From NCBI RefSeq assembly GCF_902652985.1, contig NC_047030.1, positions 18,104,001 through 18,168,000 on the forward strand: 64,000 nt of DNA, given 5' to 3'. Within the stretch, counting starts at the first letter, position 1; each line of letters begins with the position of its first letter. This DNA comes from Pecten maximus (Eukaryota). The notes beneath the pieces were generated by a model. That model did not search any database, was not told where the DNA came from, and was given only the letters and a program-made list of their open reading frames with translations. The position numbers were made by a program, and so were the translations under genes. Below, one piece after another: positions 271 through 27,100 of this stretch.

Positions 271-2358
271 TTTAGGGTAAGGGTTAAGGTGAAAGAGTCT
301 GTCATTGCCATGGCTGCCATTCACCTGACTACACTGCCATCCCATTACAGAATATGCACTCTTTCAAAAGCTTGCAAACACAATGTTCAATTTTTTATTA
401 AAGATTATCACTTTACCAAGGAAATAGATATTCTTTTACAAATGATAAATGACACAAGAACTGGTGTATCTAGTTTTTATTAAAAAATACAGTCAAATTC
501 AATAACTATACAATTTTAAGTACTGCCAATACATGTAACACTGTAGATAAAACTTCTGATTGGACACAGTCCAATTCATAGCCCAATCTTTCAATTTGCC
601 AATCCAGTACAATAACATTTAGAACTTTCAGTTTTTATTCCAAAATATGCTTCTTTTTCCCCAAGAAAAAAATATTTGCATGACAAAACATACAAAATGG
701 AACATTTATAATTATGAAAAATTTTCATATTGAAATTGTTTCAACTTGATATGCATGTACAACTATCCTCTCTTCTAACTTAGCATATGCCGAGACAGAA
801 ACAAATGTGAAGTGTGCAACTTTTCAGAAGTTCGCTTGTCAAGACTTATTTATGGAACAATGCATACCTGTTATCTAATCAACCATGTGGAACCATGCAT
901 ACCTGTGATTAAATCAACCATGTGGAACAATGCAGCATACCTGTGATTTAATCAACCATAAGGCAGCATAAAAATAAAGATTGCCACCTTAGGTTTGGTG
1001 TTTATTCACGTGACAGTACATTGTATTACTCAGCAATAAGACTTTCGTGTCTGGAACCTTATACTGAGTCTGTGACTTAGCCATAACATATCCCAAGGTT
1101 GCCGAGAACGTATGCAAATCAAAGCCTTTGGATATCTAGGATCTGAATTATATGTAACTATTACAAATTTCAATTCTTATTTAACAAAATGATTCCATCT
1201 ACAGTTTATCATACCATTTGCATAGTAGTTGTTCAAGGAAGTCATGCTATCTATCATCAATGATGCATGAAAATATGGACGGCAGTATATACAAGTGTAC
1301 ATATATTTAAATTGTATTCTAAAAATCACAACCATGCACACCTGCATACATATATATAAAATTTATATATTATAAATGTATATGATATTATATTTCTCAC
1401 CTAATCTTCATAACAAGCTCTCTATAATCCTCTCTTACTATCAAATCTATTACACAAAATAAGATACTACAACAATTCACAGTATGTTAATATTACAATG
1501 CTAGCATCAGCCTTTAGTCACCACATCCGAGCTGCAGAGAAAGACATTCAATATTATAATAAATTAACCTACAGAGTATATTTTATAGCAAATGTATGCA
1601 ATGCTTGTTACAGTAAATTATTATAGACATCTAGACTCATGTGATTTGGTGTAGATACTTGCAGGCACTTACTTTCATGAAACTGGACAAAGATTTTACC
1701 GTAGATAAATAATATGACTATTAATTTACTGATGTGGCTGTTGTTCCTGTCTAAATGCAAACTTTGGCAGCTTACAATACTGATAGTTCAAACTAAAAAC
1801 TCCTCTGCCAATAACCCTTCTGTACGAGATATACAGGACATTTTCCAATAGAGTAAGCTATTTACTTGTGTAGGTCTAGACCATATTGTCATATTGGGCA
1901 AAATCTGTCACGCCCATAACCTGTGTGTATAGACAGACTATGGGTGTTGGACAACATCAGATTTTTTAATTAACATCAATAATTGTCATTTTCTTTACTA
2001 GTCTAAGTGTTTATAGAAATAATCAGATTTCATACACATCATGAGAAAAAGAATAAGTTAACAGATATTAAGTGCTTTCGTTAGCAATTGAGTGATATTG
2101 TTACATTGTCAGTTATTCTTTGTGAATATTAACCAACATTTATTTATGGCCAACTTTCACCTTTGAAATTAACAAATCACTCACTAAAAAAAAAATTGTC
2201 AATTAGATAAAATAATTTGATGACATAATTTTTCATGCATGATGACAAATCTTGTACATGTATACATGTTAACCTCATGGACTCTGGTCATTTTCCATCA
2301 TCTTCAGGACACTCTCCAAAATACTGACTGCAGAGACCTCGAACTGTAGTGTTATTCT

Positions 2359-2526
2359 TCACGATATGCCCTTCCTAAAGAATGCGACTCCAATCATTGT
2401 TATGATTTCTCCAACGGCTGGCAGAGCCACACAGAACGCGAACACGTACCAGTAATAGTCACATGACCATAATTGGAAGAGAAAGAATACTGAGAGTCAC
2501 CGCACCAGAGGCATGAGCTGCTGTAG
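2359..2526 (-). CDS. TMEM107: Duplicated alternative last coding segment (4b) of TMEM107, with one apparent extra base
   Basis: After TCCTTGAC-AACATACCAG it reads STAAHASGAVTL[+1 nt near 2491]VFFLFQLWSCDYYWYVFAFCVALPAVGEIITMIGVAFFRKGIS*. It matches segment 4a at 32 of 54 residues and has the same splice phase. Confidence 0.8.
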
Positions 2527-2753
2527 CTGGTATGTTGTCAAGGAGACAATAACGTTGAAGGGAGGTAACTCAGTTACAGAAAATTGGCTATATTTTTTTT
2601 ACTGTAATTACAGTTGTATAAAGTAACTTCAATTCTTATTCAGGTCGTATAATTTCTAGCAGACAATCACAATTTGTGGAGAAAAATATCCTGATGTTAT
2701 CAATGCATAATGTTATGATGATGATAAATTTGGTTTCCTAATTGATGAGAATG

Positions 2754-5720
2754 CTATAACCCACGCCTACAGAAACCAATGCCGATCATGGTGATGATCT
2801 CCGTCACTGTGGGCAACGCACTGCAGAAAGCAAACACGTACCAATACCTATAGCATGGCCAAGACCAAAACAGGAAGTAAGACAGCGACACACACGCCCC
2901 ACAGTGAGCACTTATAGCTGAGTCAGCAGTCAAGGAGGAATAACGGTCACGACAGACTTCCTTACATTCATCATGTAACATAGGGCTAAGGGGAACATGA
3001 TTATATTCAACTTTGGACATTTTTAACTGATTTAGGAACACATACCTGAACATAATTGTTTGTTTTTAGCCATTTTAAACTGATTTAGGGACACACACCT
3101 GAACAAAATTGTTTGATTTTGGCCTTTTTTCAACTGATTTCGGAACACATACCGTATTTGACCTAATAAGGGCGCAGGGCACGGGTAAATGACAGTGGGG
3201 GCGCCCTTATTAAGATTAGTTATTCTGAAGTTTTATGAAACAGACTATACCTTATAGCAGAATACCCAAGGTTGTGGAAACGGTAAAATATTCAGTCATA
3301 AAAATATTCCAGATGAAGATATCTATTCATTATCATATATTAATTAAGCTTAAACATCACTTGAATACTCCTGTAAACTTGTAAACCATGCCAGCTGATC
3401 TTTAGACCAGAGAACGTGTGTTCCACCATTTATGTTCAAATGGAACTCTTTTGTGTTCTATTTATAGAAACAGGTGATTTCCCAGATCATATCAGACATC
3501 GTTTTCTTTGACCTAATAATTGATTTACAATGTCTTTTACTAGCTTTCTGTTCTGAACAAAAGTTATTTATCAACAAGAATGAAGTCTTTACTTTATCTT
3601 CAAATAAAGATGGTAAGTTATTATTTGTATGTGTGTTTAGTTTTGGGTGCTGAGAACTTTGCACTGACATGTCATATGTAGCCTGTAGGAATACACAAAA
3701 TGTGGCGAAAACATGTGTTCCAGTTACTTAATTTGCTGAAGAAAATTGAACACATAAGTAGTAAAATATTTCACATGAATTATTACTTTTTAACACCATT
3801 TTGACACTCAGTCATAGATTTATTTCCTTGAAAAAAGGTAGGGGCGCCCTTATTAGGGTAGGCGCCCTTATTAGGTCAAATACGGTACCTGAACAAAATT
3901 GTTTAATTTTGGCCATTTTAACCAATTCAGAATTTTTTATACCTGTAAACAATTGTCTTTATAAATAATACTTGTTACATTACAACTTTTCCTCTACCAA
4001 TTGAATATCAGTAAAATGCATTGAACAGAATTCCAAACAGGCTTCCCAACATAAACTCTGTCTCAATGATAACATCAACCAAGAACTAACTGAAAACACA
4101 GTGTTAATTAATACTACCAGATGTTGCAATGGGCACCACACAATATCTCTAGGTAAAAATATTATATCTATAATTGATATTATACTGTATGTTTAGATAC
4201 CAACCATCATTGTAAAACTGGTATTCTTTATGAAAAGGATACAAAGTAGACTTTGGAATGGCATAAACATGGAGATACCACCAATGAAGCCGATAAGTTC
4301 TATGACAAATAGACCCAGTGTCACAGATAGTCCAATAATCATTCTGTAATAGAGGTAATCAAATTGTACAGAGAAGTTAGTGTTATTATGTTACCAAACA
4401 GAAAATAATTTCATACCTGTGATAAATCCCATTTTTTTTTTTCTTTCTCTTTTTTTTTTAATTCAAATAAAAGTATGGACACATGTTGTAATACAGTGAC
4501 AAATAAAATATGATCCAAGTGATTATTTAGTTTTCTGAAAAATAGATACATATGATAAATACATAAGAATATATCATTCATATATATATTTATCAATATA
4601 AATAAAAAGTTGTAATAATGTTTGAAAGTAAGAACAGATAAAATTGCCACATATACTTACTCTGTGTCCTTTGTGTTGTATTCATCTACTGTGTAATCCA
4701 AGGGGAGGCATTGCTTAACATTATCCTCCTGGCAAAAATAAAATAAATTAATATAACATCACATCAAGTATGTTTTGTACACTGATTTTATTTTAGGACT
4801 TTAAGAATTTCTGGTCAGATATCTATATTTCAGTAAAGAATATTTAATATAATCTGTCCAAATGGATGCTCAGAAGATGTTTAAATATATATAATAGCCT
4901 AAATATAAAATGACCCCTCTGACCTTAAAAATGGATCAAGCTCATTCGTTTGAATGAACATTGTTGGCCTTAACACTATCAAAGCATGTTACAATACACA
5001 CCCAAAATCCTGACCGACCCTATGCCTTTTGATTATTAAAAAGTTATCCAAGATTGAACACATCAACCTGATAGTATATATCAGAAGATGATCTGTATCT
5101 TATTCAGAATTTGCATCCCATTGTGTACCTACTGAAAAGAAGCCAAAAGTATCAAATGTTTTTTCCTACTACAACAATGAAGGGGAGAAAGAATTTGCTA
5201 CTTGTAATTGTAATCACAGCATAGATTCACAGCAGAGTAGCAACACAGGCGTCTGAAGTTCTGACAGTAAACTTTCTTTTTTTATAGTAGATACTCTTAT
5301 TTTTTCTATGGTATTATATCTCAGTTTACTGTCAGAACTTCAGACGCCTGTGGTAGCAAGTTATATGATACGCCAAAAAAAGTGGAAAATATGCATCCGG
5401 CTAGTGTTCGGAGGTCCCGGGTTCGAACCCAGGTCTGGCCGTGCATTTTCCACTCCTACTACAAATATGCAGGATTTCCACTTTTTTTCAGCAAAAAAAA
5501 ATCCCGACCATGAGCATTTCTATGCATAGCTTATCAGGCCTATCATTCAGTAAATATATGTCAAAGGTGGGCGATTATTATCGTTTGAAATACAAAATCA
5601 ACAATTATTATCGTTTGAAATACAAAATCAACATACTCGTGACCATAATATTACTATGACGATGACCATATGTGCAATGATCGTCAGAAATCGAGCTGGG
5701 ACGAGGCCGTTCACCCTCAT
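2754..5720 (-). CDS. TMEM107: Transmembrane protein 107 (ciliary transition-zone, MKS module), isoform using the proximal last exon; about 138 aa
   Basis: Exons on the minus strand: 5720-5637 (MRVNGLVPARFLTIIAHMVIVIVILWSR, GT donor), 4728-4661 (EDNVKQCLPLDYTVDEYNTKDTE), 4343-4243 (MIIGLSVTLGLFVIELIGFIGGISMFMPFQSLL), 2917-2754 (SISAHCGACVSLSYFLFWSWPCYRYWYVFAFCSALPTVTEIITMIGIGFCRRGL*). Phases join in frame. Motifs GLVP.RFL, CLP, AH and YW.F.FCSALP match TMEM107 as I recall it. Confidence 0.93.
2918..4242 (-). other. U12-type (minor spliceosome) GT-AG intron 3 of TMEM107
   Basis: Donor GTATCCTTTT (4242-4233) matches the U12 consensus RTATCCTTT. Branch site TCCTTGAC at 2936-2929 lies about 12 nt before the AG with no polypyrimidine tract. 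A second branch site is at 2544-2537 with its AG at 2528-2527. Confidence 0.9.
3152..3885. mobile_element. Non-autonomous Tc1/mariner-pogo-type TIR element with TA target duplication, inside the U12 intron
   Basis: TA|CCGTATTTGACCTAATAAGGGCGC ... GCGCCCTTATTAGGTCAAATACGG|TA. It splits the third copy of a local repeat of about 54 bp exactly at ACACATA|CCTGAAC. Confidence 0.88.
5244..5352. mobile_element. 109-bp MITE with 30-bp perfect TIRs and a 7-bp TSD (P-element-like architecture)
   Basis: TIR CACAGGCGTCTGAAGTTCTGACAGTAAACT at 5244-5273, inverted at 5323-5352. GTAGCAA direct repeats at 5237-5243 and 5353-5359. Termini are CA...TG. Confidence 0.8.
5396..5462 (+). mobile_element. 5'-truncated tRNA-derived SINE fragment
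   Basis: Contains the Pol III B-box GGTTCGAACCC and is flanked by AAATATGCA direct repeats (5387-5395, 5463-5471). A diverged relative lies at about 44895-44980. Confidence 0.6.
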
Positions 5721-6120: not shown

Positions 6121-9100
6121 ATGGTAAGGTTGCGGAAAGACATCAGATAAAAAGTAACGATACACGTTACCATTATCTGGTAAACGAACTCTTTGAACTT
6201 GATTATATTCATTTCACACTAATGTGTCAAACGTGCAGGGGGGGGGGGGGGGTATATTTTTGTATTAAAATCAGTGTTTTGTAGATAGATGTTCTTCACG
6301 CTAGACCAGCGTTGGGAATGTTATATAAAAACTTATAGTATTAGTTATATCATGTTGAAGTAAATGCTAAGATTACCTAAATGCATCATACCATAATTAA
6401 GTAAGCTCAAGCTGCCATATACGATATGTCTTACCGGTGTTTTAACAGTCGCCCATTTATATAGAAAAAAAACGTGCCTGTACTGAGTACAGTAGTTTTC
6501 CAGAATGAAAACCTTGCTTGGTAACAAAGCCATGTTTTTGTCCTGTGTATTCAACGTCCTTACCATTGCTACAATTGTTAAATCAATGCCTCCACTATAG
6601 CAACTAAACTCTTGAAATATGGAACCTAGCCCAAGTTTACTCTGGACCTGACACCATGTCTAATGTAGGGCCATAACGCACCACTATATGTAAATGTGGA
6701 ATTCTCTGACATTGTTTTGTAAAAACTTACGATTAGTCTCTCCAAAAATTGACATGTGTTTCTAATTTAAAAGAATTCTAATTTTCCAGATGAAATGCAT
6801 ATTAACTGAATTTATTACATGCATCTTTTCTGGTGTAATGATAATTTGATTATGATTTTTTTTTCAGCCGCTTCGTTTGGATATCAAGCGGAAACTGTCC
6901 GCTAGATCTGACCGAGTAAAATGTGTAGACCTGCATCCAAGTGAGCCATGGATGTTGGCCAGTCTGTATAACGGCAATGTCCACATCTGGAACTATGAAT
7001 CACAAGTAAATCAAACTCTTATTAAATTGTGAACTGTCATGCAGGATTATATCTATATAATTATGCACTGTATCTTTGATGTTTGGGTGAAATACTTGCG
7101 AAATTGTACAGTGAAACCCTTGTAAGCTCGCCATGATGAAGTTCATGGAAGCTATTGCTATACCCCTGGCATCAGCATTGTCCAAAGACAGCTATGTTTA
7201 AGTGTTGTAATACTTTTGAGGATACAGCTTAGGTATTTGCTATGTGTGTTAAGACCTTTCCATCATAACTACATTTGCGGAACTGCTGATCATGGTTATG
7301 ACCTTTGACCTACTTTTAAAAAAAACTTAAGCCTTGGCCACTGTATGTTAACTGTACAGGATAGGGCTTTCGTATTTGGCATGTGTATTCCTTGTGACAA
7401 GACCTTTTCATTGGAACTACATTTGCGGACCTGCTGACTGTGACCTTTTACCTACTTTTATACAACTAATTACGAATTTCAAACCACTCAACAAGATATG
7501 CTATCTTCTGACAACTCGTTGAATTTAGTTGATTAGAAAAATATTTATATGAAAGACCTTAATCACAATTTCTTGAGGTATTCCATCCAAACATGTATAT
7601 ATATATATACATTGTATATGTAATTACCGACATCAAAAGGTTAACTCATGAGTGGGTACCTTATGTACATGGTGCCCACATTGATATTTCTCTCATGTTT
7701 ACCAAGATCAAGTAAATGTTTAGAAGTTTACACATTGAAAATATTCTTCTGTTATTGTTCAAATTGTTTTGAAAACAAATGTTTTTGAGCAAAAATGTTA
7801 TTTCTACTTGTCATTTAAACAAGTGAATTTAAATAATTTTTGTATTGCATAAACATTTTATCTTTGTCACTGAAATCAGTTTTCTTTGTGTAATTTTGTT
7901 TTTAACTCATTTCAGCAACTGATAAAATCGTTTGAAGTATGTGATCTGCCTGTGAGGTCAGCAAGATTTGTTCCAAGAAAGAATTGGATAATAACTGGAT
8001 CTGTAAGTGAGAACTAAAGTGAGAACTAGAATATCACGAGTCACAACACACTGTTTCTGGATTTTAATGTTATTTGATAGATGGAAATACCAATATTCCG
8101 TTATCAGTAGACATTTGTTGTTTCAAGTGTGCTGACTTGATCATTGCAGCAATTCATTTTATCAGACACAAAAAATGTCTGATTCTGCTAACCTGGTAGT
8201 AGTGGTTGACCCTGTAATCTTTTTTCCATCCTGTAAATTTTTTTGGCGTTTTCAAGGAGGGACTTCACTATTTTGGTAGATTCCTTCTCGTTATAACCCG
8301 CTTGTAAAACTTTTTTAAAAGTGGAAAGATTTCATGGCTTTTTGTTGGTGGAAAGACATGTCTATAATTTTAAATCTGCTACTATATACAGTGAAAGATC
8401 CTGAATGATATCCATTACATAAAGTAAATATAATTTGTAGTAATTTAAAAGTGATCCAAAGGCCACTCATCATTTATTTCAGTATTATACAATTAAACCT
8501 CAATGACATTTATAAAATTTTGTGGCTTTAACTGATAATTATTTCCATTTGCACAGGATGACATGACAATCCGAGCATTTAACTACAACACACTTGAAAG
8601 AGTTCACCAATTTGAGGCTCACTCTGACTACATCAGGTCCCTGGCTGTCCATCCAACACAGCCATTCATCCTCAGCAGCAGTGGTCAGTTTAAAACATAT
8701 GTTATCATTTGATAAATTGTACTTAAATGAAATAAATGATAATGTTGATATTATAGTAATATGTCTTGGTTCATATAGAGACCTTGAAAAGTGGTTGAAT
8801 TTCAGATCAGTGCTTGAAACATTTTCATTTTTTTCTTAGAAGTCCTTGAAAAGTGCTTGAATTGTCATATTTTTTTCCTTGAGATCTATTGAGAGTGTAT
8901 GATTTGTTTCATGTGGACTTAAGAAAAAATCAAGGACATCTTATTTTTGCTTTAATTTTCTAAACGTAGTGCATGGATTTGATTTGTTCATGAAAGTAAC
9001 TGAATTCGGACAAAACAATGCATGTGAAAAAATGCTGGAAAAGTGCTTGCATTTTGATATGAAAAATATTTATGAACCATGCATATCAATATTTTTGTAT

Positions 9101-12100
9101 AGGCAATATATTTTACAGCAACATTTCAAAATATCTGGACACCTGATATATAATAGATATATGTAAAGATTCTGGATTCGTGTACCTTGGATGGTTAAAT
9201 GCAAATTTGTTATCATCCATCCAATAAGCTGTACAGAAATGACCAGGGTATACACAAATGGGTTCTTTCTGTTTCTTCATTTGTTCAAATTTTGTGAGGG
9301 AAAATTATTTTAATACAAATGGGCATGATCCCTCCTTTTGAAATTTAGTAAGTTTTTTAGTGGGTTTCATCCATCTGTTTGTCTGTACAAAATCAGGCAT
9401 GTGATGAACATGCTTTTTGATGTTTGAGTACCATAATGATTTTATTTAACATTCACTGTGTTTATTTACAGACGACATGTTGATCAAGTTATGGGATTGG
9501 GAGAAGAAGTGGACATGTACCCAGGTGTTTGAAGGACACACCCACTATGTGATGCAGATCATCATTAATCCCAAGGACAATAACACATTCGCCAGTGGAT
9601 CTCTCGACAGGACAGTCAAGGTATGGGGGAATCTTTTGTAGACACATTAGTATATTTATCAAAACTTTTGCCTGTTAATAACCCCACCCATGTCTATAAC
9701 AAATCTGACAGTGAAAAAGCTAACAAATCCCATTGTCCTTGTTCTGTCTGCGTTTTAGTAAAGTTTTGTTTGTCCCTTTGACTTGTGAACTGATAAATAT
9801 TGTACATGTGTATGAAAAATAAAATTGTGATTAGAGCTGTTCCAAAATCATCTATGTATGAGGGTTGGGCTTTTTTTTTCGGAGACCCTACCAACCATCA
9901 AAAAAAAAAAAATCGGGAGACCCTACCACCCGTAAGAAATACTAGGAAAATGGGGCATTCTTCCACCGCCCCATCTAATCTTAATACAAGAGCCTCCCAC
10001 CCCTTAAACACATGATTTTGGAATAGTCCTTTACTGAGTTTGGTTATAAACCGCTGGATTACTTAGATATCTCCTTCAGATTTGGACAGTGAAATTGACT
10101 CCTATTAAAGGACGAGATATGTGAATGTCCGACTTAATCAGTCCTTATTCACAAATAGGACTGTGTTTAGATAAACTGCGCAATGAGATATTAATTATTA
10201 GATTTATTGACTTTTGTTAATATGTGGTGCTTCATAAATGAATTAATAATGTTAACAATATCATTGTAAATGTAAAGTGAATGATAGTTACTACACCGAG
10301 ATCAATATTCAGGTTTAGTAGATTTTATTTTGATGGGTGTCATAACTTTCTTAGAAATACACGGGCAAGAGTGATAACAGTAGATTTACACTAAAACCTA
10401 CATGTAGACTTAACTTTAAACCATTAGACATGGGTAAGATTCACACTAGTAGATTTTGTCAAATCTTCTTGAAGATTATACTTCAAATGTTGTACGTTTG
10501 CCTTATGTAGGTCTGGCAGCTGGGTTCCCCAACACCAAACTTTACACTGGAAGGACACGAGAAAGGTGTTAACTGTCTGGATTATTACTCTGGCGGAGAC
10601 AAACCATACCTAATCTCGGGGGCTGATGACAGACTTATTAAAATCTGGGATTATCAGGTAATCAGAACATACAACAGTACAAACATTACAGTGATACATC
10701 AAAAGCCCACTTACTCAATCCTGTATTACAGCATTTCACTACAATAAAATGCCACTTACTCAAACTTGTATTACAGCATTTCTATACAGTAAAATGCCAC
10801 TTACTCAAACTTGTATTACAGCATTTCTATACAGTAAAATGCCACTTACTCGAACTTGTATTACAGCATTCTCTACAGTAAAATGCCACTTACTCAAACT
10901 TGTATTACAGCATTTCTCTACAGTAAAATGCCACTTACTCAAACTTGTATTACAGCATTCTCTACAGTAAAATGCCACTTACTCGAACTTGTATTACAGC
11001 ATTTCTCTACAAAAGAATGCTATTTATTCGAACCAGCTTTAAAACATTTCTTAACAATAATTTCTGTATTTTCCTAATGAAGGTTCGAGTCAGGATAGAA
11101 AATGCCTCTTAGACAATATCTGACTCACTGTTTGTTCAGTATACATGTTACATACTAGTTTCTCTTGTACAAAAACCAGATTTAACATAACTGAATTTAG
11201 GTACATATTCATAGTCTACAAGCCTTTTAGTGTTGCTGAATACTTTCTGAAATTCCAGTTCTTTCATCACAGACAAACATTTCATTATATTTGTAATAAA
11301 TGCATCCAAGTTATGATTCTATGGAGAAACAGAAGTACATTTTTCTAGATAAGCAAATCTCATGCTCTCTTGAAGGAAGATGGAAATTACATAAACAAGT
11401 TTGAATCAATAACATCATTTATGTTTTGACAGAACAAAACCTGTGTACAGACGCTGGAGGGACATGCCCAGAACATTTCAACAGTTTCTTTCCACCCTGA
11501 GCTACCTATTATCATGACAGGGTCAGAGGATGGTAAGTTTTGTTTTGACAGCGTTTGGTAATTAAATTAAAATTAGTAACTCAATATGGTTGCTGACAAC
11601 AAAACTAAAGATTCAGAAACACAGAAATGTCTACCTTTATAATTATATGAAGCATATGGGCGAAAAAAGCCAAATTTGGATGACTTTCGGAATTGTTATT
11701 ATTTTCCTTGAGATTTAAATGATTTAAATATTTTGTTTTCATAGTTGCTTATTGATCCACCTCTCCAAGTGTAGACCTTTGTGATATATATATATATATA
11801 TTGTTATTTCAACTCGATTGGTTAAAAGATCTTATCAAAATAAAGAAGCAAGTACATGTATGATTGTCTGCAATTGCACAGCATGGTCAAAGCAGTGGTG
11901 CAAAATGTTTGTTTTTGTGCTGTTGTCCAAAATCAAGAGTCATTAAAAACAAAAATCCGGTAATGTTTATTTTCATTTCCTTATAGGGACAGTTCGTATC
12001 TGGCATGCTAATACCTACCGATTGGAGAGTACGCTGAACTATGGACTAGAGAGGGTGTGGACTATTGCCTGTCAGAAGGGGTCAAACAATGTCGCCCTCG

Positions 12101-21100: not shown

Positions 21101-24100
21101 TCTCCATCTGTCACTGTAAATAGACTTCAATACTGACAGTAGCTATTGATAGTCCCCTACCAGTACACTGGAGGAGGTTATAGATTTTGTCTCCTGTCTC
21201 AGTCTGTTAGACTTAGAACCTTGTAACACTATTACTTTAAACTATAATTATTGAGTTCTTTTGAGCAAGTGTAATTTATTGGAAAACTGGTATTTAAAGT
21301 TAAACCTTCACTTTTCAGGGATGACTACAGCTAAGCTAATCACTTAAAGTAACATAAAAGCCAATTACGGAAACTGAAATGATAATAAAAAAATAATAGA
21401 AAAAAGTATTTTTATTTCTTTACTTCTATTAAAACAGGAACCCGTTGCAGCCCAAAAACCCTCGGAGCAGCCAGCTGACGCTCCAACACAGGATGGACAA
21501 TTATCCAGTGCAGACATGGCAGACATTGAACAAGAATTAGAACTGGACCTTGGAAAACCTCAACATAGATAACCTGGACTCAGTGGTAAGTTTTAATTGG
21601 CTTCACTGAAATAACGCTAACAAATCTGAAGCACTTTCTGTTTGTTTTTTGTTTTTTTATATTTTCGGCTTTTTCATGTAGGTGATTACATTTAATTAAA
21701 CAAAGTACTTTTGTTATAATTAATGATGTTAGTTGTGTGAAAGATGTGAGGATGGCTTTTAACAAAACATCTTTTATACTGTTATCAGTAAACCAATTTT
21801 CTTTAAAATAACTAAATGCTTTACTGTAACTTTCATTGCTTTATTGTTTTCATTTCATAATGTTTTGCGGGGCTTTTGGTTATCATTTAATTTTCTTTAT
21901 ATAATTTGGTGCTTAACAATTACTGTGGCTTTGGTTTGTCCTCATTTTGGAATTAAAAATTTCATTAATGGCTCTGATTTTAGGAAGTAGATGACAAAGA
22001 GTTAACAAATTGATGAGGTAAGAGGGTCACTGTATGACTGATTTCTACATATCCTTTTACTTTTGGTGTTTAGGTGCATTTTGTTTTAGTTTGAATGCTT
22101 CTAGTTGTATGTGATTTATAACATTTCATGTTGATAAATTTCAATCAATCAATCCAATAAAAGTATGAGTGTAATCATATCTGTGTCACATTTGAACTCC
22201 ATTTGGCTTACTTTTATTTGCCATTGAAAAATCAAGCTCGATAGTAAAACCACTGACAAGAATTGGTAAACACAATTTACTTTCATAGGTCAGAGATAGC
22301 AATTATACAAGACAGATTTTAATACTTTTATTGGCCAGATTTAGTAATTATACAAAGCAGATAAATAACTTTATTGACCATATTCATTCAGCAATTATAC
22401 AAAACAGATTTTAACACTTTAATTGGCCAGATTTAACAATAATACATAACAGATTTGAATGCTTTTACTTTAACTTGTTACTAATAAAGATATGTATGTA
22501 TAACAACTTCTATACAATATGCTTATTAGGGCCCTGTATCAGATAGGGGTGTCCTATAATTGTTATCTGTCTGTCTGTTGTATTAGAGATACAGGTATCC
22601 TATAATAGTTATCTGTCTGTCTGTTGTATTAGAGATACAGGTATCCTATAATAGTTATCTGTCTGTCTGTTGTATTAGACATACGGGTATCCTATAATAG
22701 TTATCTGTCTGTCTGTTGTATCAGACATACGGGTATCCTATAATAGTTATCTGTCTGTCTGTTGTATTAGAAATACAGGTATCCTATAATAGTTATCTGT
22801 CTGTCTGTTGTATTAGAGATACAGGTATCCTATAGCTTAGTAATCAATAAGTCCACCCGTCCTTCTGTCCACAAATTTAGTTTGCGGCTGATATCTTAAA
22901 TATTTGTTGACTGATACATGAAATTCGGTCAAGATGTTAAGTTTACAAAAATACTGAGGTCAAAATTCAAGGTAAAATATCAAGGTGATTGGATGCAAAG
23001 CCCTTGGTTCAAATTTTGTACAACCCTTCACACGAATACTAGATCTCTTGACTGGAGAATATTTTGTTGTGACATTATCAAGCAAAGTTGTTTGGAATGA
23101 TACAAAAAAAACCTGACCAAAAGATGAGGTCAAATGGTCAAAGATTGAGGTCAGTTATTCCAAAGGTCCATGTCAAATTTGTATCTTTTCACTAATAAAT
23201 ATTTTGTTATGATACAAATTCAACTGACCAAAAGCCATGGTCACAAGATCAAAGGTCAAGGTTAGTAGGTCAAAGGAGGTCAAATTCTTCTCACTGTCCG
23301 ATGAATATTTTATTATGATACTCATAAGCAAAGTTGATCAGAATTAAACAAGGAGACAACTGACCAAAGGTCAAGGTCACGGTGAAATGGGTTAAGGGAA
23401 GTTTGGGGATATATAGCCACACAGCAGGCCCACTGCTGATCTGTCAGTGTTTTTGCTGCATATTGAAATTGAATGGACCATCATACTCAATTTAAATGTT
23501 TTGTTGTTGTTTTGATTTGTAATTTTCTAAAAAGTAACAACTAACATTATAATGAGAATATACATACATGCATGCTTTGTAAAACCACATTTCTCAGCTG
23601 AAAATAGGCTCTTTCTGGGTTGAGATTTAAATGTTGGTTTGAATGTCCCTACATTATAAAAGGGGAGGATAAAATAGCTTTGTTTCATGAAACCTTCAAT
23701 AGATTAAGGTCACATCCCCACTTTAGACTCCATTGTAAATATGTATGGTGGTCTTTGGTTTAGATGTAGGATGTCGCTTGGGGGTTGAGGTGTAGGGTGT
23801 CATTTGGTGGTCAAGGTGAGGGGCGTCACCTGATGGTCAAGGTGATGGGCATCTATGGTCTCATGTGATGGTCAAAGTGTAGGGTCTCACGTGATGGTCA
23901 AGGTGTAGGGTCTCACGTGATGGTCAAGGTGTAGGGTCATGGTGATGGTCAAGGAGTAGGGTATCACGTGATGGTCAAGGTGTATGGTCATGGTGATGGT
24001 CAAGGAGTAGGGTCTCACTTGATGGTCATGGTGATGGGTGTCATTTGATGGTCAAGGTGATGAGCATCTAGGGTCTCATGTGATGGTCAAGGAGTAGGGT

Positions 24101-27100
24101 CTCACGTGATGGTCAAGGAGTAGGGTCTCACTTGATGGTCAAGGTGTAGTGCGTCGCTTAACTGCAGATGACAGTATGGGAAGAATTTCTGTGTTGATCA
24201 CTAACTTGGCTTAAATGTTGTGGACTCAAAACTATTTGAAAAATTCTAGGTTGGACTACTAGTATATATGAATAAATTTGAAGTTTTTGATTCCATTATT
24301 GAATTGCCTCATTATATAACCTGCTTTTAACACCAGGTTGCTAATACTTGGTGTCTGATGTGGAAGTTAACATCAATTTAGTGAAGTTTTATTTTTTTTA
24401 AAGAATATTCATAATGTGTTTTCACTTAATTACTGGTATTTGGAATATTGGTTTAATATTGTATAGTAACTGCTGTAGCATACAATACATTATGGATATT
24501 GGGAAATTAAGGAGACTGTTTTAGGAGGAAAAGCGAATTTTCACATGATTTGGACTAAAGCGTTTTTTGGCTTAATTCAACTTTAAGTTAGAGATTATAC
24601 ATTATACGTTCAATGCCGGATATAATCAGCATAGCAGATGTGGCATTAAAGATATAAGTTTTCGAATATTTTGTACATGTGTCCTCTACATTTGTCAGTT
24701 TACACCTGACTAAAATACTTACGGATCATTTAACATTTGATTGTGATATCTACTAATGCTATATCCTCCCTGACAGCTTGTGACGCACACCTGTGATAAT
24801 TCCATGAATCATGTTAACAGCTTGTATCAGTTATCACTACGTAAACCTGTTATTTATTGAGTGGGATGGTGTGTGAATATCACGAGCATTTGTCATGAAG
24901 ATTTATTTTGCAGGTGAAACAAAATACTAACATTATACTGCATTGTGGAATGACAAGTCATTCCCTTGCAATGGTTTCTTTTCTTAAGATAATGATTTGT
25001 AGCCTTTCCCAGATTTAAGTTTTAACGAGTAATTGATAATATTAACTGATAAAGGTGCTCTACTATAAAAAAGATTAACTGCTAACAAGTTTCCAAACAA
25101 CACATGTACAGTTCACAAAATATGTTTGTAAATCCTACAGTTTCATAAGAATTTATTTTCATATTTATATAAGGAATTATTATATACAGTTAAGTTATGC
25201 ATTGTTAGTTCAATTATACAGGATATTCAAATCTTCAACTACCGGATCAACAAACACTTTATGTACAGTCGAATCTGTATTAAGCGACCACTCAAGGGAA
25301 GTTAAAAACGGTCTCTTAATGGAGAGTGGTCTCTTAATAGAGATGGTATCTTAAATTTAATAAATGTTCATAAGCTTTTTATTCGCTTTATAAATTGGCA
25401 ATAATGATTCATAATATATATGAAAAATGAACCACCACTTTGAATAAAACAAAACAATTTTATTTTTTATTTTTTTGTGTATTTTTTTTTTTAATAATTA
25501 TTACTGTGCTAATTTTTCATCACTATATGTATTTTTTGAAATTCTTTCAGCATAGCAAAATAAATCGATTTAACATGAGAAGTATATTTCATTGGTTAAT
25601 TAGATTACTTTCAAATTATTTATATATTTTTTTTTAATTCCTGAAATCTTGGTCCGGATTTCCGCTCCGATTATTATTTACGTTCCTGCATTTCCTACTT
25701 TAAAAACGGCGACTTTTTCACTGGCAAATATCTGTTTTAATGTCTCAAAAAAGATAACAAATCACGATTTAACAGTAAGTTAACTGTTTATGCATTCCTT
25801 CATTGTTATATTTCGTATGCAAATTGATATATCGTATATAAAACGTCTGAAAATCGTCAGAATTCCAGACGGTCACTTCGCTTCATCTCCCGTCCTTTAG
25901 CACGAAAAGTAAAAATACTTGGGTGTGATTAAGGCGAAAATGGTTATGTAAGGCATTTTGGAGACTTCTGGTCGCTTATTGGAGAGTTATTTTCATCACG
26001 GGAACGAAAAATTGTGGTCGCTGGTCGCGTAAAGAGAGGGTCGCTTAATAGAGTTAAAATATATAGCGACTGCACTGGACAATCACTGGGATAATACCAA
26101 CAAATAACTTGTGTATATATATGAAAAAGGACAAATTAACTCATTGCACACCAGATGTATATCACATTGTAAACATTGTAATATCAATTGATATGGACAT
26201 AGAGGCTTACAGCCTGCATCCATTATTTATCGTATTAAATCGTATTAAATCGAAAACGCTCGGGAGGAATTGAAATGGTCGCTTAGAACAGAGGGTCGCT
26301 AAATAGAGATGGTCGTTCGGACAAATTCGACTGTATTTGAACTCTGAATATATATTATAACATAGACAGTTTTTGACTTATGCCCTGACCGGTCCTCAAG
26401 CTCACAATCTACAGCATCAAATCCCCTAGTCAGGAAAAACCAAAGCTGCTATCATTAAGATATGCAAATAATTAATTCACAAAAAGAGATATTAAGATCT
26501 TATGAAAGAGTAACATAAAATGATAAGTGATACCACTAGTGAGAGTTTTTTACCCATTTTTAGCTCACCTGTACGAAGGACAAGTAAACCTTTCCATTGA
26601 AATAACTGCTTAATGACAAAGAGGCCCAGAGTACTGGTATTACATTGAAATAACTGCTTAATGACAAAGAGGCCCAGAGTACTGGTATTACATTGAAATA
26701 ACTGCTTAATGACAAAGAGGCCCAGAGTACTGGTATTAGGCCTGTAGCCTGCTGGGGTGAAGGGCTTCCAAGTTTGATCGAATATGACCTTGTCCTGCCT
26801 TAAAGGTCACAGGGGCCAAATGTGCCTAAATCTTGAAAGGTCTTATTATAAAGAGCCCCAGAGTCCTTATAAAGGGCATGAAGCATGCTGGGGCATACGG
26901 CTACCAAGTTTGTTCAAATGAATGACCTTGACCTACTTTTTAGGTCACCAGTTGTACTAAAATAAAATAATTGTACTTATGATGTGGTAATCAGTATAGC
27001 ATCTGCATTAATGAGCTAAGTCAACTTACAAGTTACATTAGAAGCAGTTGAGCAATATAGGTCCTTTGAGCCTCTTTTTAGATTACCTATTTGAAGATTA

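Follow-up and report, generated by a model that had tools for sequence, protein, structure and literature searches.

Results

The 64-kb stretch of Pecten maximus DNA analysed here (the window) carries on its minus strand a gene for TMEM107, a transition-zone protein whose loss leads to Joubert and Meckel-type ciliopathies. Protein comparisons were run exon by exon, against P0003 (TMEM107-like, Pecten maximus). The coding part of exon 1 (5637..5720) begins with the ATG at 5720, has the translation of P0003 amino acids 1-28 and is directly followed by a U2-type GTATGT donor. Exon 2 (4661..4728), bounded by an acceptor AG at 4730-4729 and a GTAAGT donor at 4660-4655, corresponds to amino acids 29-51, and exon 3 (4243..4343), which encodes TM2 and ends in phase 1 with the T at 4243, to amino acids 52-84. 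The proximal terminal coding exon, 4a (2754..2917, stop codon at 2756-2754), supplies TM3, the following loop, TM4 and the tail (amino acids 86-138). Compared in this way, the translations of exons 1-3 and 4a match P. maximus XP_033764326 exactly. Against the curated cut-off of 26 bits for the Pfam family TMEM107 (PF14995), exons 4a (48.5 bits), 4b (the distal terminal exon; 2496-2362, 32.2 bits), 3 (28.9 bits) and 1 (26.6 bits) all score above it, and exon 2 alone (15.7 bits) falls below. In a Kyte-Doolittle scan the b isoforms of related species have four hydrophobic segments; the a isoform has three above the threshold, with TM3 just below it. A tblastn search of the window with scallop proteins found no third TMEM107-like copy, and a DNA search found no second TMEM107 copy elsewhere in the genome. 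Judged by these matches, the locus is the scallop TMEM107 gene.

Exon 4a has an adjacent duplicate, the distal terminal exon 4b (minus strand, 2359..2526, conserved-frame stop codon at 2361-2359), which tblastn with P0125, P0005 and P0124 identifies as orthologous to the b isoform of other scallops. The two exons have 53 and 54 codons, respectively, and the same acceptor phase. They encode the same residue at 31 of 53 aligned codons; counting the split Ser codon common to both gives 32 of 54, which reproduces the figure given in a preliminary description of this DNA. The codon itself is also the same at only 11 of the 31. When the 4b pieces 2524-2492 and 2490-2365 were placed end to end, with base 2491 omitted, we obtained a pS of 0.94, which is saturated, and a pN of 0.29. 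Likeness in the 60 nt upstream of the two acceptors is confined to the branch region (CGTTATT, then 1-2 nt, then CTCCTTGAC); the local alignment of these segments scores 14, as compared with a mean of 7.1 and a maximum of 13 in 500 shuffles. The claim that synonymous positions and flanks have diverged is thus borne out. The low pN against a saturated pS, together with the conservation of the a and the b form, each across Bivalvia, supports the further proposal of an old duplication with both copies under purifying selection. A motif scan placed the first AATAAA past either stop codon at 2139..2144 (minus strand) and found none between 4a and 4b, which makes it probable that the two forms share a single poly(A) site and that 4b lies within the 3′ UTR of the a-form mRNA.

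The third intron opens with the U12-type GT-AG 5′ splice site GTATCCTT (4235..4242, minus strand), which is the sole copy of this motif in the window and abuts the last coding base of exon 3. The donor, GTATCCTTTT at 4242, has T at position -1 and lies in phase 1, in keeping with the preference for U at -1 and for a non-zero phase at U12-type 5′ sites (PMC7367187). Two acceptors, 391 nt apart, face this donor. Each has a branch box TCCTTGAC. The box of acceptor a (2929..2936, minus strand) carries the branch A at 2930, and the intron ends 12 nt further on, at 2918; in the box of acceptor b (2537..2544, minus strand) the branch A is at 2538, and the intron ends 11 nt further on, at 2527. The branch A of U12 introns typically lies 10-15 nt from the 3′ splice site. 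A minus-strand scan for TCCTTRAY from the donor to the end of 4b gave these two boxes and no others. The single donor with two U12 acceptors, and the branch site 11-12 nt before each AG, therefore stand as the preliminary description gave them. The genome carries two U12 snRNA genes (107 and 106 bits, cut-off 53), and the conserved branch-recognition box of the snRNA, GAGUAAGGAAAAU, pairs with UCCUUGAC with one G-U pair. As regards competing RNA structures that might select the exon, only a weak inverted repeat (18 nt, 78%) was found. All the sequence criteria open to test fit a U12-type mechanism for the third intron, and its splicing is predicted to depend on the minor spliceosome. The naming of TMEM107 as a minor-intron gene in the preliminary description agrees with published statements, in passages that do not name the intron, that human TMEM107 and zebrafish tmem107l have a minor intron.

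The reading frame of 4b is broken in this assembly. The b proteins of three scallops align by tblastn to 2527-2492 in frame -1 and then to 2490-2362 in frame -2; since the frame switches between 2492 and 2490, exactly one base, 2491 (minus strand), is extra. It lies in the non-homopolymer context CTC[A]GTA. Read from 2526 in the phase of the donor, 4b consists of 22 codons, including the split Ser, before a stop codon at 2461-2459, and the conserved remainder of the exon lies in a different frame. Here the preliminary description, which had each copy opening a complete C-terminal half in one phase, does not hold: its account of the exon pair is right as to motifs, spacing and homology and wrong as to an intact in-phase 4b. 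Likewise, its interpretation stands for the old duplication, for selection and for two isoforms, the last of these in relatives, and fails for a complete 4b C-terminus in this assembly. It had named a frameshift only among the conditions that would refute it.

With base 2491 skipped, 4b is identical to the Argopecten b form at 50 of 53 residues and 4a to the Argopecten a form at 49 of 53, which gives no hint that constraint has been relaxed. The 42 codons past the break match those of other scallops save at one position, which is itself variable among them. Where a dead duplicate would show several disabling changes and relaxed constraint, 4b carries one indel only, has no second lesion and retains its branch box and AG. 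On this evidence 4b is not a decayed duplicate, nor does the extra base reflect long-standing decay. The best reading of the frameshift is that it arose in the assembly, is allelic or marks a loss that happened very recently.

Both forms are found in other bivalves. The b protein is read from an intact frame in Mizuhopecten, Ylistrum and Argopecten. Aligned with 4b it shows 92-95% identity, and it leaves the common part of the protein at the codon predicted by acceptor 2526. One protein-database search gave a single hit, and another, with the region of P0005, recovered that query alone. Pairs of a and b forms are annotated as isoforms of one gene in three scallops, three Mytilus species, six oysters, Mya and Sinanodonta. 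In these relatives exons 1-3 are common to both isoforms; the differences span TM3 and TM4, the loop joining them, and the tail, as had been expected of isoforms that diverge in the last two membrane segments and the loop between them. Mizuhopecten yessoensis XP_021346809 and XP_021346811 (X1/X2) switch after residue 84, as do the pairs of Crassostrea, Mytilus, Mya and Sinanodonta. Their C-termini resemble those encoded in the window, with an a-type that begins AHC and has Arg in the loop and a b-type that begins AHA/G and has an acidic loop. Exons 4a and 4b are orthologous to them; the b copy in the window differs from theirs by the 1-nt frameshift. These X1/X2 pairs are known from automatic annotation alone, and we found no paper describing the TMEM107 a/b pair. 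Complete a-type and b-type ORFs from relatives are also present on Logan/ENA contigs of 708-1900 nt, which are too short to contain the introns and hence represent spliced mRNAs. The arrangement is bivalve-wide at least, with a parallel in vertebrates, which is far wider than the preliminary description saw.

Discussion

We propose that intron 3 of scallop TMEM107 is of the U12-type GT-AG class and that its one donor (4242) faces two U12-type acceptors, each of which has its own optimally spaced branch box and stands ahead of a tandemly duplicated terminal exon. Use of the proximal acceptor (2917) would yield the a isoform. Use of the distal acceptor (2526) would remove 4a with the intron and yield the b isoform, in which TM3, the extracytoplasmic loop, TM4 and the tail are all different. 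The two forms would be mutually exclusive, since 4a and 4b both end in a stop codon and 4a is not followed by a donor. An ancient pair of alternative terminal exons chosen by the minor spliceosome, with 2491 a likely error or allele and P. maximus still making both isoforms, is the reading that we consider reasonably probable. Under it, both acceptors would be used in P. maximus, and the isoforms may differ in function, for example by serving different types of cilia as the preliminary description suggested.

The extra base at 2491 is most likely an error of assembly or polishing, or else an allele carried by the animal that was sequenced, with both isoforms still made. Alternatively, the base may be real and fixed, with the b isoform lost very recently in Pecten maximus; 4b would then be a pseudo-exon in the 3′ UTR of the a form or the source of a truncated product with three TM segments. 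The frame is indeed broken in the sole available sequence, and the public annotation of P. maximus lists one TMEM107 protein without an isoform tag, as against X1 and X2 in three sister scallops. Furthermore, indel errors of long reads usually fall in homopolymers, and this one does not. On the other hand, 4b carries a single lesion, is as well conserved as 4a and has kept its splice signals. By a rough estimate, the loss would date back only a few million years, after some 500 million years of retention; we regard such a loss as unlikely. With the extra A, an AG also arises at 2491-2490. Were this AG used as the acceptor, the exon would start at 2489, in the phase of the donor and open to the stop codon at 2361-2359, so that the frame would be restored and the b form would lack its first 12 residues. 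This AG, however, lies 48 nt from the branch A, far beyond the usual distance, whereas the upstream AG at 2528-2527 is at the optimal 11 nt, and the product would lack most of TM3. We rejected this frame rescue on account of the branch distance and give it hardly any credence.

It is similarly far-fetched, in our view, that the b copy is chosen by something other than competition between U12 splice sites, such as splicing from an upstream exon not seen here or a U2-type event, or that the branch boxes are fortuitous. Motifs of eight nucleotides do arise by chance, with 1.5 expected per window, but both boxes are properly spaced from AGs that are in phase and at which homologous exons begin, the interval holds no other match to the branch consensus, and the sole available donor is U12-type. 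Moreover, the isoforms of relatives keep exons 1-3 and switch exactly at the junction. Under the favoured reading, in which the minor spliceosome chooses between two terminal exons, the public annotation of P. maximus misses an isoform, probably through the single-base problem.

U12 introns are generally thought to be seldom alternatively spliced, and TMEM107 belongs to a set of cilium genes that require the minor spliceosome. The JNK genes reportedly have mutually exclusive exons 6a/6b whose choice involves U12-type sites; in clusters of this type two U12 donors are said to face one acceptor, with exclusivity arising from the U2/U12 incompatibility of the intervening intron. The JNK exons 6a/6b (MAPK8/9/10) and human MXE clusters resemble TMEM107 in having tandem homologous exons and a choice that involves U12-type sites. 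Five human MXE clusters with U2/U12 incompatibility have been described (Hatje et al. 2017, PMC5740500). In contrast to the JNK type, TMEM107 would have one U12 donor and two U12 acceptors, with exclusivity resulting from both exons being terminal. One U12 donor with two conserved U12 acceptors would give two membrane-embedded versions of TMEM107 and would offer a handle on two questions, namely the composition of the transition zone in each type of cilium and the choice of the minor spliceosome between competing 3′ sites.

Many non-mammalian vertebrates also have two TMEM107 isoforms of equal length, which differ in 32 residues (86-117) directly after the same junction; such pairs occur in bichir, paddlefish, gar, eels, frogs, caecilians, turtles and squamates. 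As in the scallop, one member is of the AHC type and the other of the AHA type, and the charge of the short loop differs. Unlike in the scallop, the duplicated part is the 32-residue internal exon only, with a tail exon common to both forms, and the genomic order, as deduced from the read-through models P0026 and P0062, appears to be b then a rather than a then b. A tree built on the 32 columns favours independent origins of the mollusc and vertebrate pairs (85/83 support), but with a p of 0.41 the AU test does not separate independent from common origin. We think it doubtful that the a/b switch at the minor intron of TMEM107 goes back to a single bilaterian ancestor. Should it have a single origin, molluscs and a range of vertebrates, from ray-finned fish to reptiles, would both have retained for more than 500 million years an alternative TM3-loop module selected by the minor spliceosome, with two kinds of ciliary transition zone as the result. 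Should it have arisen twice, the same exon would have been duplicated in parallel, a striking case in which the differences between the a and b forms also converged. The reference cDNA protein of Xenopus laevis, Q3B8H0, is of the b type.

TMEM107 gene model and U12-type splice signals

The window sequence contains no N, and we checked the TMEM107 gene model on its minus strand one exon at a time against P0003, the protein named 'transmembrane protein 107-like [Pecten maximus]' (XP_033764326). Exon 1 (5720-5637), exon 2 (4728-4661) and exon 4a (2917-2754) match it exactly, and the translation of exon 3 (4343-4243) equals residues 52-84. A second terminal coding exon, 4b (2526-2359, minus strand), is a clear homologue of 4a. 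Profile matches to the Pfam TMEM107 family (PF14995) exceeded the cut-off in exon 1, exon 3, 4a and 4b, and a DNA search of the 918-Mb genome (3983 contigs) found the locus to be single-copy. WD40-repeat exons (Pfam PF00400) lie on the plus strand at 6877-9641, in a gene placed head-to-head with TMEM107 about 1.1 kb from the TMEM107 ATG; its N-terminus presumably resembles that of coatomer beta-prime, a putative assignment.

The donors of introns 1 and 2 are the ordinary GTATGT and GTAAGT. At intron 3 the donor is GTATCCTT, which occurs once in the whole window (minus strand, 4242-4235) and adjoins the last coding base of exon 3; it has T at -1 and phase 1, both typical biases of U12-type GT-AG introns (PMC7367187). 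On the minus strand 3′ of this donor there are exactly two TCCTTRAY boxes, 2936-2929 and 2544-2537, both reading TCCTTGAC, with the branch A 12 nt from the last intron base at acceptor a (2918) and 11 nt at acceptor b (2527). The preliminary description, which had proposed one U12 donor at 4242 serving two U12 acceptors, was correct in its coordinates, motifs and spacing. Intronic likeness between the 4a and 4b copies is confined to 17-18 nt around each branch box, which suggests that selection has acted on both boxes. The genome holds two U12 snRNA genes (L002 and L003; 107 and 106 bits, cut-off 53), on the same strand about 8.8 kb apart (G000:C5:10024646-10033579), and the GAGUAAGGAAAAU box of the snRNA pairs with UCCUUGAC through one G-U pair and with the branch A bulged. 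The remaining four copies of TCCTTGAC in the window are unrelated to the TMEM107 acceptors: they cluster within 170 nt on the minus strand (23948-24119), probably form a tandem repeat, and explain why this 8-mer is in excess in the window.

Paired isoforms in bivalves

Relatives were gathered by a search with the Mizuhopecten protein and by cluster look-ups. Bivalve TMEM107 isoform pairs come from one gene and are identical through residue 84, after which they continue as a-type or b-type to the end. Such pairs were found in scallops (Mizuhopecten yessoensis, Ylistrum balloti and Argopecten irradians), mussels (Mytilus californianus, M. trossulus and M. galloprovincialis), six oysters (Crassostrea/Magallana, Saccostrea and Ostrea), Mya arenaria and Sinanodonta woodiana; further entries are b-type in Dreissena and Ruditapes and a-type in Solemya. 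Full-length a-type and b-type ORFs of relatives also occur on Logan/ENA contigs 708-1900 nt long; these are too short to hold the three introns and therefore represent spliced mRNAs. Among the matches, gastropods, a chiton, an annelid, a tunicate and a scorpion have one form each.

A tree built on the 32 residues that follow the junction groups the bivalve a sequences as a clade (support 97/90) and places the bivalve b sequences to one side of a branch supported at 64/71. The two forms have no residue in common at columns 86, 90, 102, 103 and 108. These discriminating columns lie at the start of the third membrane segment (TM3) and on both sides of the conserved W-x-C in the short TM3-TM4 loop; position 108 is Arg in the a form, and position 102 is Asp, Glu or Gln in the b form.

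An extra base in exon 4b

Of the 53 aligned codons of 4a and 4b, 31 agree in the encoded residue and just 11 of these also in the codon (pS 0.94, saturated; pN 0.29). Both copies had been described as opening complete C-terminal halves in the same phase, which does not hold here: read from 2526, 4b stops at 2461-2459, and the rest of its conserved sequence is in another frame. When b isoforms of the three other scallops were aligned by tblastn, residues 85-96 fell on 2527-2492 in frame -1 and those from 97/98 on were placed at 2490-2362 in frame -2, so that the frame changes at one extra base, 2491. If this base is left out, purely for the comparison, 4b and the Argopecten b isoform share 50 of 53 residues; 4a and the Argopecten a isoform share 49 of 53.

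Base 2491 stands in a non-homopolymer context, CTC[A]GTA. No second lesion was found in 4b, its branch box and AG are intact, and by its sequence it does not look like an old dead duplicate. The base could be an assembly or polishing error or an allele of the sequenced individual, in which cases the species would still have isoform b, or it could mark a fixed, very recent loss. P. maximus alone among the scallops listed has a single protein, in agreement with the broken b frame of its reference assembly. Our rough priors for error, allele and fixed loss are similar; taken together, error or allele is the explanation we consider reasonably probable, and a fixed loss appears unlikely. The AG created at 2491-2490 was rejected as a means of rescuing the frame: although in frame, it is 48 nt away from the branch A, and splicing there would cost most of TM3.

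A parallel pair in vertebrates

Many non-mammalian vertebrates have two annotated 140-residue TMEM107 isoforms with the same tail and with differences confined to residues 86-117, which begin right after the same junction as in bivalves. The pair occurs in bichir, paddlefish, gar, tarpon, conger, frogs, one caecilian, at least nine turtles, geckos, monitors and snakes. An AHC-type form is paired with an AHA-type one, and for Xenopus laevis the protein of the reference cDNA is of the b type. Two public models that continue through exon b into exon a, P0026 (Paramormyrops, 201 residues) and P0062 (Oreochromis, 166 residues), are likely annotation artefacts and reveal the exon order. By these two models b precedes a, whereas in the scallop a precedes b. 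In vertebrates only an internal exon is duplicated. The tree places molluscs on one side and vertebrates with other taxa opposite (support 85/83), and a single ancient split into a and b was not rejected by an AU test (delta lnL 1.4, p 0.41). We lean towards independent rather than common origin of the mollusc and vertebrate pairs.

Proposed splicing choice

Since the sole donor is U12-type, the minor spliceosome would have to serve both acceptors. Use of the proximal acceptor would yield isoform a, and use of the distal one would remove 4a along with the intron and yield isoform b. A motif scan found no AATAAA or ATTAAA between 4a and 4b, the first lying at 2144, and 4b is therefore probably carried in the 3′ UTR of the a-form mRNA. 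A search for an RNA structure that might select between a and b gave no convincing candidate. We infer that the two isoforms probably differ in function through TM3 and the charge of the extracytoplasmic loop, which could alter the set of MKS-module partners that the protein retains.

JNK 6a/6b is a further case of duplicated exons with a U12-linked choice. Five human clusters of duplicated exons with a choice involving U12 sites were already known (Hatje et al. 2017, PMC5740500), and it is established that TMEM107 is a ciliopathy gene with a minor intron (PMC7507305, PMC9992838 and a 2026 zebrafish preprint). In the literature we found no paper on TMEM107 a/b exons or on a two-acceptor U12 intron in this gene. 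The a/b isoforms of relatives are already present in public annotation, which lessens the interest of the pair; its deep conservation and the vertebrate parallel add to that interest.

A probable transposon within the U12-type intron

Positions 3150-3887 of the U12-type intron are taken up by a 738-bp element whose 26-nt terminal inverted repeats are perfect. At least 40 scored copies, of 1058 first-look candidates, are spread over many chromosomes at 98-99% identity, and by appearance the element is a young MITE-like transposon with recent activity. It appears to have inserted into a 53-nt tandem repeat array, of which three units lie at 3012-3171 and one more matching unit beyond the transposon at 3886-3921.
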